Shown here: positions 12,603-35,396 of the stretch, piece after piece | Layout: every line of letters begins with the position of its first letter | Position numbering within the stretch: position 1 is the first letter of the stretch | Assembly (NCBI GenBank): GCA_002269645.1 | Contig: NIVC01000827.1 | Coordinates: 124,001-188,000 of the forward strand | Reading direction: 5' to 3' | Source of the DNA: Macrostomum lignano | Taxonomy: Eukaryota | DNA: 64,000 nucleotides | Notes under the pieces: model-generated | What the model was told of the DNA's origin: nothing | Database searches by the model: none | What the model saw: the letters and a program-made list of their open reading frames with translations, nothing else | Translations under genes and position numbers: made by a program

Positions 12603-15600
12603 TCAGCCGGTCCATTTCTGCTCCACCGACTCGGCTGTCAGCGGCTGATCGCTTCTGCGTAGCCAGAGTCGCTGCAGCACCTGGTGGGGCAGCCGCTGCA
12701 GACCCAGGTAGGTGGCGTGCAGGCGGTTGGACAGGCAGCGGACCGTGGCCTGCGGATTGGGGCGATGAGGCTGAGGGGCGATTCTTGTGGGGCTGAGGGG
12801 CGATTCTAATGGGGGCTGAGGGGCGATTCTTATGGGACTGAGGGGCGATTCTTATGGGGTGGCTGAGGGGCGATTCTTATGGGACTGAGGGGCGATTCTT
12901 ATGGGACTGAGGGGCGATTCTTATGGGACTGAGGGGCGATTCTTATGAGGTGGCTGAGGGGCGATTCTTATGGGGTAGCTGAGGGGCGATTCTTGTGGGG
13001 CTGAGGGGCAATTCTTATGGGGTGGCTGAGGGGCGATTCTTGTGGGGTGGCTGAGGGGCGATTCTTATGGGGTGGCTGAGGGGCGATTCTTGTGGGGCTG
13101 AGGGGCGATTCTTGTGGGGCTGAGGGGCGATTCTTGTGGGGCTGAGGGGCGATTCTTGTGGGACTGAGGGGCGATTCTTATGGGGTGGCTAAAGGGCGAT
13201 TTTCATGATGGGGTGGCTGAGGAGCGATTCTCATGGGGTGGCTGAGGGGCGATTCTTATGGGGTGGCTAAAGGGCGATTTTCATGATGGGGTGGCTGAGG
13301 GGCGATTCTCATGGGGTGGCTGAGGGGCGATTCTCATGGGGTGGCTGAGGGGCGATTCTTATGGAGTGGCTGAGGGGCGATTCTCATGGGGTGGCTGAGG
13401 GGCGATTCTCATGGGGTGGCTGAGGGGCGATTCTTATGGGGTGGCTGAGGGGCGATTCTTATGGGGTGACTGAGGGGCGATTCTTATGGGGTGGCTGAGG
13501 GGCGATTCTCATGGGGTGGCTGAGGGGCGATTCTTATGGGGTGGCTGAGAGGCGATTCTCATGGGGTGGCTGAGGGGCGATTCTCATGGGGTGGCTGAGG
13601 GGCGATTCTTTTGGGGTGGCTGAGAGGCGATTCTCATGGGGTGGCTGAGGGGCGATTCTTATGGAGTGGCTGAGGGGCGATTCTTTTGGGGTGACTGAGA
13701 GGCGATTCTCATGGGGTGGCTGAGGGGCGATTCTCATGGGGTGGCTGAGGGGCGATTCTTTTGGGGTGGCTGAGAGGCGATTCTCATGGGGTGGCTGAGG
13801 GGCGATTCTTATGGAGTGGCTGAGGGGCGATTCTTTTGGGGTGACTGAGAGGCGATTCTCATGGGGTGGCTGAGGGACGATTCTTATGGAGTGGCTGAGG
13901 GGCGATTCTCATGGGGTGGCTGAGGGGCGATTCTTATGGGGTGGCTGAGGGGCGATTCTTATGGGGTGGCTAAAGGGCAATTTCGATGATGGGGTTGCTG
14001 AGGGGCAATTCTCATGGCATGACAAAATGCTCAGCAGAGCAGCAGGCAATTACCTGGCAGGGCAGCTGGGCCCTCAGCTCAGTCTCCAGTCGCTGCCGCA
14101 GTCCCGGCAGGAGGCTGACGCCGCCGCACAGCAGGACGCAGCGGGCCACATCGCGCCTGTAATCCACCGGGCAGGCCAGCACCGCCTGCCGGACCGCGCG
14201 ACTCAGAGCGGGCGCGTCAAGGCCCAGCATCTGGGGGTCGAAGATCGCCTCCACGCTGGAGAACCGGCTCTCCGAGTGGGTCAGCTCCTGCGGAGTGAGG
14301 TTGGCTCAGAAATCTCCCCAGCTCACAGTGACAGCTCAGAAATCTCCCCAGCTCTCAGTGACAGCATAGAAATCTCCCCAGCTCACAGTGACAGCTCAGA
14401 AATCTCCCCAGCTCACAGTGACAGCTCAGAAATCTCCCCAGCTCACAGTGACAGCTCAGAAATCTCCCCAGCTCACAGTGACAGCTCAGAAATCTCCCCA
14501 GCTCACAGTGACAGCTCAGAAATCTCCCCAGCTCACAGTGACAGCTCAGAAATCTCCCACCCCGTCACCCACCTGTCTGTAGTCGGGCGGCAGTCTGAAC
14601 TCTGTCAGGCTCAGCGTGGCCTCAAACTCGGCCTCGGCCACCTGGCAGCGGGCCAAGTCTCTCTCGTAGTCCTGACTGACGTAGCAGCTGCGCTCGAGGG
14701 CCAGCCGGACCAGCAGCTGCTCCGTGGGCGAGTGCAGGCGGTAGCGGTGGCGGGCCAGGCCGGTGCCGAGGTGCTGGCTGAGCCGGTGACCTCCAATGTC
14801 CGGTTTCAGACAGCCCGTCAGCACTGGCGAGTGCTCCAGGTGGGCCGCCACCTCGGCCTGCCGGTTCAGGCGGGGGGGGGTGGATGTTGCTCAGTGCGGA
14901 CAGGTGAAAGTCGGACCGACAGACAGACAGATAGACAGATAGACAGACAGAGAGACAGACAGACAGACAGACAGACAGACAGACAGATAGACAGATAGAC
15001 AGACAGAGAGACAGCCAGACAGCCAGACAGATAGACAGACAGACAGACAGAGAGACAGCCAGACAGCCAGACAGATAGACAGACAGACAGACAGACAGAC
15101 AGACAGACAGGCAGACAGACAGACAGACAGACAGGCAGACAGACAGACAGACAGACAGACAGACAGACAGGCAGACAGACAGACAGACAGACAGACAGAC
15201 AGGCAGGCAGGCAGGCAGGCAGACAGACAGACAGACAGACAGACAGACAGACAGACAGACAGACAGACAGACAGACAGACAGACAGGCAGACAGACAGAC
15301 AGACAGACAGACAGACAGACAGACAGACAGACAGACAGGCAGGCAGACAGACAGACAGACAGACACACAGGCAGACAGACAGACAGACAGACAGACAGAC
15401 AGACAGACCTGGTGCCCGAGCTGCACCACCACGCCGGAGGAGCAGCCGTAGGCCAGCAGGCAGGCCAGGCTTTGGCTCGCCATGGCAACGGCGTCGAAGC
15501 CGAGCCGGCCGAGCAGCAGATCCGCCAGGAGGCGGCGCGAAGCCGGTGACGTCTCGCGAGGCACCGCCACCAGCGCCGAGCAGCGCCGGACGTCCACCGG

Positions 15601-35396: not shown

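Follow-up and report, generated by a model that had tools for sequence, protein, structure and literature searches.

A Macrostomum lignano gene joins a PH domain to a divergent actin fold and belongs to an ancient, uncharacterised animal protein family

One gene encodes a PH–actin protein

A 64,000-nt stretch of the Macrostomum lignano genome (NCBI GenBank assembly GCA_002269645.1, contig NIVC01000827.1, positions 124,001 to 188,000; here called the window) carries on its minus strand, between positions 35396 and 12603, a gene whose product joins a PH domain to a complete but highly divergent actin fold. The nine exons are those of a single M. lignano gene, BOX15_Mlig006667g2, and sequence comparison places its product in an ancient, monophyletic family of animal PH–actin proteins that is so far uncharacterised. 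The identity of the gene and its membership of this family are, in our view, practically certain. The gene has already been annotated, as encoding a hypothetical protein, and relatives are present in public databases; the family itself is, as far as could be determined, undescribed.

The gene was rebuilt on the minus strand (35396..12603) from open reading frame (ORF) fragments and splice-site context. Nine exons give a coding sequence of 2103 nt, specifying 700 amino acids (aa) and a stop. Each internal boundary is AG...GT and the exon phases, in order 0,0,0,0,1,1,0,0,0, are mutually compatible. An in-frame stop at 35450-35448 (minus strand) lies 5' of the start ATG. A prediction made earlier from the DNA letters (the original prediction) had proposed nine phase-compatible exons and an ORF of ∼700 aa, and its start, stop and 33886/17667 junction were reproduced exactly by this independent rebuild. 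The translation is identical over 700/700 residues to GenBank PAA76352.1 (BOX15_Mlig006667g2, 'hypothetical protein', Macrostomum lignano).

Exon 1 (35154..35396, residues 1-81) begins with the ATG at 35396, encodes a low-complexity head and ends at the donor AAG/GTGAGT. Exon 2 (33886..34434, residues 82-264; acceptor TTTCAG/, donor GGG/GTGAGC, phase 0) encodes Pro-rich and acidic stretches, followed by an invariant W[DN]PxxLLxxLY helix (residues 164-174, 34188-34156; the WDP helix) and by strands β1-β6 of the PH domain, which starts at residue 198 (34086-33886). Intron 2 (17668..33885; 16,218 nt, phase 0) interrupts the PH fold between β6 and β7. Exon 3 (17521..17667, residues 265-313; acceptor CCGCAG/, donor AAG/GTATTT, phase 0) supplies PH β7, the C-terminal helix with W282 and a linker (FYxRPV), the PH domain ending near window position 17596. 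The actin fold follows, with β1 and the phosphate-1 loop in exon 4 (17332..17392, residues 314-334), subdomains 1 and 2, from which the DNase-binding loop (D-loop) is deleted, in exon 5 (16578..16799, residues 334-408), and the subdomain 1 helix bearing Q458 (equivalent to actin Q137) together with the phosphate-2 loop VVVQLGHQ, where D154 has become Q475, in exon 6 (15409..15623, residues 408-479). Exon 7 (14573..14857, residues 480-574) encodes parts of subdomains 3 and 4, a divergent W-loop (LEHSPVL) and the motif ERSCYVS; exon 8 (14054..14287, residues 575-652) parts of subdomains 4 and 3 and the adenosine loop; and exon 9 (12603..12749, residues 653-700 plus stop) the C-terminal part of subdomain 1, ending ...EQKWTG before the TGA at 12605-12603. 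At the exon 5/6 junction, the M. lignano sequence contains 10 inserted residues.

The PH fold spans the 16-kb intron

The alternative to a single gene is that a PH gene (34-35 kb) and a neighbouring actin-like gene (12-17 kb) have been misjoined over a 16-kb gap. Intron 2 is indeed very long compared with the genome average of ∼1.1-1.4 kb (PMC5730564), and separate genes are implied by the older gene models P0003 and P0004 (286/287 aa), in which the exon-2 donor is read through into a 57-bp minisatellite, adding ∼22 extra residues. However, with exon 2 alone the PH fold would be incomplete, having neither β7 nor the C-terminal helix that bears the invariant Trp. The Pfam PH match (residues 198-288) straddles the exon 2/3 junction at residue 264/265, and in an AlphaFold model this junction falls between β6 and β7, with β7 and the Trp-bearing capping helix encoded beyond intron 2. 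Also, the GenBank annotation of this assembly, which joins the 34-35 kb exons to those at 12-17 kb, is not ab initio but derives from a genome-guided RNA-seq transcriptome (StringTie and TACO), with boundaries set by trans-splicing and poly(A) data and ORFs called by TransDecoder (PMC5730564).

The intron is also old. In Anneissia japonica, a crinoid, the mapped orthologue has 15 exons over 42 kb, and in the hemichordate Ptychodera flava it has 13 exons over 19 kb. M. lignano, Anneissia and Ptychodera all have a phase-0 intron in the alignment column that follows M. lignano residue 264 (DDG/RGR, TDT/KGR and RDE/KGR), and a second phase-0 intron, after residue 313 at the start of actin β1, is likewise common to the three in position and phase. 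Because intron 2 shares its position and phase with the crinoid and hemichordate introns, the two halves constitute one ancient gene, and intron 2 is itself ancient, its great length having arisen by expansion in the flatworm.

The M. lignano genome contains this arrangement twice. A homeolog, PAA76385.1 (locus L001), has nine exons and splice sites as in the window gene, with an intron 2 of 15,090 nt. It differs from PAA76352.1 at 12 residues, both ORFs are intact at 700 aa, and transcripts exist for both. Taken with the collinearity of the PH–actin module in >100 proteins from about ten phyla (below), the PH fold across the junction, the intron kept in deuterostomes, the homeolog and the RNA-based annotation effectively refute the misjoining of two genes, which we regard as exceedingly improbable. 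The low ratio of non-synonymous to synonymous change between the two copies (below) is a further line of evidence for one gene. The single gene originally predicted across the junction thus stands. For annotation, the lesson is that a 16-kb minisatellite-rich intron with a nested gene can mask the true architecture of a gene, the older models having cut the protein at 286 aa.

A PH module precedes a full-length actin fold

The M. lignano product consists, in order, of a 155-residue disordered head, the WDP helix, the PH domain, a conserved linker of ∼25 residues and the actin fold. In a Pfam scan of the 700-aa protein, Actin (PF00022) scored 99 bits against a cut-off of 27 (E = 3e-28) and PH (PF00169) 30.4 bits against a cut-off of 25.1, and nothing else was credible. 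The AlphaFold model, made for residues 156-700 from a 15-sequence family alignment, had a predicted local distance difference test (pLDDT) score of 79 and a predicted template modelling (pTM) score of 0.74, and contained a seven-strand-plus-helix PH domain followed by a full four-subdomain actin fold. When this was compared with the PDB using Foldseek, the top 50 matches were all actins, with template modelling (TM) scores of 0.80-0.86 over ∼390 columns (0.84 to G-actin). A pairwise BLAST alignment to β-actin covers only ACTB residues 114-369, at 24% identity; the actin fold is nevertheless full-length, since the structural match extends over all ∼390 columns. A sequence search of the PDB placed actin first (87.9 bits) and the actin-related protein (Arp) Arp2 of S. 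pombe at rank 43 (78.9 bits). Thus, both Pfam and AlphaFold/Foldseek agree with the predicted order, in which the PH domain immediately precedes an actin fold of full length.

In a model of the PH region alone (pLDDT 81), the WDP helix was still confidently placed (pLDDT ∼80), and since this does not depend on the actin domain, the helix is probably part of an extended PH module. The seven PH strands and the C-terminal helix are present in both models, and W282 is invariant. Foldseek matched the PH-only model to lipid-binding PH domains, namely those of SKAP55, kindlin-3, ArhGAP9, ASAP1, IPCEF1, PLEKHA7, Grp1 and DAPP1, and a profile of the family PH region matched ARHGAP25, myosin X, ORP11, TAPP1, PLEKHB2 and cytohesins.

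PH–actin proteins are widespread in invertebrates

When 1.84 billion cluster representatives were searched exhaustively with phmmer, 102 matched at E<=1e-30, their alignments running without a break over query residues ∼146-672. In the matched proteins, of 520 to ∼3000 aa, the PH–actin module is invariably C-terminal. When a profile hidden Markov model (HMM) was built from the family alignment, 111/154 sequences examined reached its WDP/PH part. Counted as sequence clusters, 111 carry the collinear PH–actin module, and they come from cnidarians, ambulacrarians, lophotrochozoans and ecdysozoans. Among 20 full-length members, Pfam found Actin in all 20, PH in 19 and no other domain; the N-terminal regions, of 0 to ∼2500 residues, contain no Pfam domains. 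Word-index homologue searches, whether with the full protein or with the 15-sequence family profile, returned only the paralog, the relatives being recovered by the exhaustive search and by a query with the hemichordate protein.

Members were found in Annelida (Owenia), Nemertea (Tubulanus, Lineus), Mollusca (Mizuhopecten, Octopus), Brachiopoda (Lingula), arthropods (ticks, decapod crustaceans, Odonata and Ephemeroptera), a filarial nematode, Hemichordata (Ptychodera, Glandiceps), crinoid echinoderms (Anneissia, Antedon) and the scyphozoan cnidarian Sanderia. Example entries are XP_021342763 (Mizuhopecten), XP_074646886 (Tubulanus), XP_070576743 (Ptychodera), LOC117108722 (Anneissia), LOC106163389 (Lingula), KAL3981876 (Acanthocheilonema) and EP00794_P006119 (Sanderia). 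All named members are 'uncharacterized', 'hypothetical' or 'PH domain-containing'. Uncharacterised invertebrate homologs, suspected in the original prediction, therefore exist in large numbers, also in Cnidaria and Ambulacraria. The same prediction knew of no characterised protein with this architecture, and the homology searches likewise matched neither such a protein nor a characterised family. Literature searches for PH-plus-actin-fold proteins, for Arp classifications with PH domains and for both locus tags, in a coverage that took in few subscription journals, gave nothing relevant.

The uncharacterised relatives share with the M. lignano protein a collinear WDP helix, PH domain, linker and actin fold, with 30-35% identity over ∼520 residues, the Pfam pair, the two intron positions and phases, and membership of one clade. 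They differ from it in the head, which is shortest, at 155 aa, in M. lignano and reaches ∼2500 aa in relatives, and the M. lignano sequence is the most divergent at family-invariant positions. The WDP helix is invariant in the family and lies ∼30 residues upstream of the PH domain, whose consensus is 'EGYLEKLPxxxKKATLxKxWKRRYF'. A linker motif, 'Y/F-V-x-P', is also conserved, as are, in the actin fold, 'IIDLGSCSxRAG', 'QxxLALYSY...SGIVVDIGxRxDVVPIxDGY', 'ExxCYVA', 'RFxxxEGLFxPxLWGLDxPG', 'LSGGVTLLPG', 'VHASPxRYHAAYLGA' and a C-terminal 'KW'.

In a neighbour-joining (NJ) tree of the actin fold, 98 PH-bearing sequences and four fragments that start inside the PH domain or the module formed one split, supported by 269/300 bootstraps, with β-actin and 16 divergent actin-like proteins on the other side. 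Of these outgroups, three divergent proteins were checked and are actin-like, not canonical Arps. The single split indicates a single origin of the PH–actin fusion. The family would predate the cnidarian–bilaterian split, an Arp-like fold having been covalently fused to a lipid-binding-type PH domain since before that divergence and in at least 10 phyla. To our knowledge, the family is absent from vertebrates and Drosophila melanogaster; it has remained unstudied probably because the usual model organisms appear to be without it.

The actin fold resembles an Arp more than an actin isoform

Over the whole fold, family identity to β-actin is 26.9%. The nucleotide site is 45% identical, with a within-family conservation of 0.72; the barbed-end face 31%, with a within-family conservation of 0.53 (0.52 for the protein average); the lateral contacts 21%; and the pointed-end face 14.5%, with 24% gaps and deletion of the D-loop. 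D11, G13, Q137, G156, R210, E214 and G301/302 are near-invariant in the family, and the cleft residues Y143, T148, G168, Y169, L346 and F352 are kept in its consensus. Arg always replaces K18, and Cys or Ala replaces G15; at G158, 41/49 sequences have Arg, and H161 is deleted. Of the nucleotide motifs, M. lignano keeps D319, G321 and S322 (phosphate-1), Q458 and G629/G630, and its phosphate-2 loop reads Q475-L-G-H-Q, the family sequence being D-I-G-E-R. With the nucleotide site largely kept, the pointed-end face poorly conserved and the D-loop deleted, this pattern points to an Arp-like fold that probably binds nucleotide but does not polymerise, rather than to an actin isoform.

A polymerisation-competent actin isoform with an N-terminal extension like that of filactin, co-assembling into filaments and tethering them laterally to membranes through its PH domain, would account for the completeness of the four-subdomain fold and for the consensus cleft residues. 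An N-terminal fusion is also sterically possible, as the actin N-terminus lies at the outer surface of the filament. Nonetheless, we consider such an isoform highly doubtful, given an identity to β-actin of only 24-35%, the deleted D-loop, the poorly matched and gapped pointed-end face, the loss of H161 and the replacement of G158 by Arg. The high identity, intact D-loop and longitudinal surfaces of a conventional actin were not found in the family. What it does share with β-actin is the four-subdomain fold (TM 0.84), the DxGS phosphate-1 loop, Q137, the GG adenosine loop and the motifs 'E..CYV' and 'RF..PE.lF.P'; it differs in being ∼24-27% identical, in lacking the D-loop and H161 and in its placement behind a PH domain.

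Compared with Arps, of which Arp2/Arp3 or the dynactin pointed-end Arp11 (Arp10) are functionally closest, the family shows Arp-level divergence, a largely kept nucleotide pocket and a pointed-end surface more divergent than the barbed-end side. It differs in its phosphate-2 loop, DIGER rather than DSGDG, and in a D-loop that is deleted, not replaced. We know of no Arp with an N-terminal PH domain. Dictyostelium filactin resembles the PH–actin proteins as one of the rare longer proteins that end in an actin domain; this domain, however, is nearly conventional ('extremely homologous') and classed as a bona fide actin, and it has no PH domain. A near-conventional actin domain of this type is not seen in the PH–actin family, whose fold is ∼24-27% identical to actin. 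The primate POTE-actin fusions also have a C-terminal actin domain in a longer protein. Filactin and the POTE-actins are lineage-restricted, whereas PH–actin proteins occur in both Cnidaria and Bilateria.

The family PH domain has a phosphoinositide-type signature

A basic β1/β2 signature, K-Xn-[K/R]-x-R, marks phosphoinositide-binding PH domains. In the family, the β1 Lys position is K/R in 89/111 members, and the last Arg of the β2 motif W-K-[RK]-R is present in 74/111, with Lys in 10 more. The family consensus is putatively of the phosphoinositide-binding type. Its best profile and fold matches are to PH domains of this kind (ARHGAP25/KIAA0053, myosin X PH2, TAPP1, Grp1/cytohesins, kindlins, ArhGAP9 and PLEKHA7), from which it differs by the added N-terminal WDPxxLLxxLY helix. 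In the M. lignano PH domain, with K203 and W-K218-R219-V220, the last signature Arg is replaced by Val and the phosphoinositide signature is incomplete.

The M. lignano protein is a derived member

The M. lignano protein keeps 50/58 of the columns that are >=90% conserved elsewhere, the lowest value among 49 members (median 0.96). Its losses include D154 to Q475, D157 to His, G158 to Gln, Y143 to Leu, G168/Y169 to His/Ser in the W-loop, the plug Trp to L595 and the PH β2 Arg to V220. This low score and the loss of key residues are what would be expected of a decaying relic, a pseudo-ATPase or pseudo-PH protein on the way to being lost, with no conserved function left. We think a relic improbable, however, as both homeologs have intact 700-aa ORFs and all splice sites, transcripts of both copies exist, and the fold is confidently modelled. 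Comparison of the homeologs gave 22.5 synonymous and 12.5 non-synonymous differences, and a ratio of non-synonymous to synonymous rates (dN/dS) of 0.19 over the whole length, with 0.07 in the PH domain and 0.17 in the actin fold, values that rest on 35 differences only. As neither copy is disrupted and both are transcribed and show purifying selection, we regard the M. lignano gene as a derived but functional member of the family, not a pseudogene. Judging from the residues lost, its product may be chiefly a scaffold in which the lipid and nucleotide functions are weakened. The supplementary tables of three M. lignano expression papers contain no entry for either locus tag.

A possible membrane-recruited Arp-like module

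In the mechanism that we propose, the family PH domain would recruit the protein to membranes by its basic K...K-x-R signature. Without a D-loop and with a poorly conserved pointed-end face, the actin fold would neither insert into a filament nor add onto one as actin does. At most, it would offer its barbed-end-side cleft to an actin subunit or to some other helical ligand. The resulting role could be that of a membrane-anchored pointed-end cap, a nucleation seed or an adaptor. The nucleator, capper or scaffold suggested originally would fit the family consensus, with its PH domain of the phosphatidylinositol phosphate (PIP) type, kept nucleotide site and deleted D-loop. A membrane-recruited, non-polymerising Arp-like module is the likeliest of the functions considered but, as a mechanism taken alone, a tentative proposal. 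The whole statement, comprising one gene, a PH–actin family and a membrane-recruited Arp-like module, we hold to be a little less probable than its opposite. A more specific version, in which the family is an unrecognised ancient metazoan class of Arp, recruited by phosphoinositides and capping or seeding actin filaments from the pointed end, is in our opinion unlikely.

Several observations weigh against this mechanism. The barbed-end face is no more conserved than the protein average, which leaves a specific actin-binding surface, and with it any binding of actin, speculative. Family-wide, the phosphate-2 loop has been remodelled (G158 to Arg, H161 absent), and ATP hydrolysis, or even nucleotide binding, may therefore differ from that of actin. 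For the M. lignano protein itself, the lipid and cleft arguments are weaker, since Val stands in place of the PH β2 Arg, Gln in place of D154 and Leu/His/Ser in place of Y143/G168/Y169.

The main rival takes the actin fold to be a nucleotide-dependent interaction module unrelated to filaments, like the nuclear Arps that dock on helices within large complexes. The PH domain would then be mainly protein-binding or a regulator acting within the molecule, and the long disordered N-termini would be the functional scaffold. This would suit a fold in which the nucleotide site is the best-conserved part and the filament-contact surfaces show no special conservation, as well as N-termini of very variable length without Pfam domains and a WDP helix that is modelled confidently with the PH domain alone, as in an extended PH module. 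It sits less well with the canonical lipid-binding basic signature of the family PH domain, which most resembles lipid-binding PH domains, and with the actin part having its best matches in actin and Arp2, not in Arp4/5/6/8. We judge the rival rather unlikely.

As far as we know, Arp-type actin folds are nearly always stand-alone polypeptides that work inside multi-subunit complexes. A phosphoinositide-recruited class that caps or seeds filaments from the pointed end, if real, would do in one membrane-coupled polypeptide what complexes such as Arp2/3 do otherwise, and the family points to an unexplored membrane–actin coupling or an unexplored use of the actin fold.

An upstream motif in the N-terminal regions

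The original prediction had also named a DFRxxL/Pro-rich head as a feature of the protein. As a feature of the family, this was not upheld. DFRxxL occurs once, at residues 31-36 within head segment 31-41 (window 35306-35274), and as a family motif it was rejected, being missing from ∼60 relatives. The Pro-rich head had no Pfam match, and nor did the N-terminal regions of other family members. A different motif, [FLM]P[SN]V[KR]xL[RL]xxFE, is found 86-173 residues upstream of the WDP helix in ∼14 mainly arthropod members (P0014, P0016, P0018, P0021-P0025, P0030, P0034, P0037, P0068, P0087 and P0091). It matches nothing in Pfam and might serve the family N-terminal regions as a linear binding motif. 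A looser pattern, [hydrophobic][KR]x[LIVM]xxxF[EDNQ], aligns 'LPSV(K/R)xLRxxFE' with 'FRSVLAAFN' of M. lignano; this alignment is post hoc and weak, with a roughly estimated ∼1% probability of occurring by chance in the head. Going by this resemblance, the DFRxxL region may be the flatworm version of the motif, at a similar distance upstream. Identity of the motif with Xin repeats was considered and dropped, as neither the LPSVKxLRxxFE segments nor the M. lignano head gave a Pfam match at E<=10.

The surrounding locus

Intron 2 contains a nested gene on the opposite strand (23989-31102, plus), which is F-spondin-like, with Spond_N, spondin-type TSP1 repeats and two Kunitz stretches. An F-spondin-like gene is nested in the same way at the homeolog locus L001, where its product has 987 aa and a Reeler domain in addition. 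Introns 1, 2, 5, 6, 7 and 8 hold large mini- and microsatellite arrays of up to 124 copies. Those at 12769-14017, 14304-14558, 14914-15408 and 15872-16543 have periods of 25, 30, 4 and 22 bp, respectively, and those at 17759-18020, 31764-32633, 33188-33876 and 34453-35061 periods of 4, 45, 57 and 26 bp. Several come within a few bases of a splice donor: the 57-bp array starts 10 bp beyond the exon-2 donor, and the exon 6 donor, CAG/GTCTGT, passes directly into a (GACA)n array. At L001, a Rogdi_lz gene (5839-8827, plus) lies on the same strand as the homeolog, ∼1.2 kb upstream of its start codon. The suffix 'g2' in the locus tag of the window gene suggests a second gene cut from one transcriptional unit.

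Elsewhere in the window, ORFs like those of a long terminal repeat (LTR) retrotransposon occupy 55501-59241 (minus), encoding an integrase (rve, Integrase_H2C2) and a reverse transcriptase with RNase H, together with an upstream gag-like ORF that has a zinc-knuckle-like end. Fibrinogen_C exons at 866-1264 (plus), 6121-6618 (plus) and 59422-60078 (minus) suggest that a few fibrinogen-related genes are clustered here; downstream of the homeolog, too, there is a Fibrinogen_C gene. An amiloride-sensitive sodium channel gene (ASC, DEG/ENaC family) has exons at 8014-8868 and 10778-11155 (plus). A 709-aa Thr/Pro-rich, mucin-like ORF with no Pfam match (42213-44342, plus) is set in a stretch of extreme strand bias (GC skew -0.73, AT skew +0.67), with a block of 27% GC upstream at 40-42 kb. 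Finally, an uninterrupted 946-aa ORF at 49767-52607 (plus) contains a block of ∼330 aa twice, EGF/EGF_CA domains and a Thr/Pro/Ala-rich tail.

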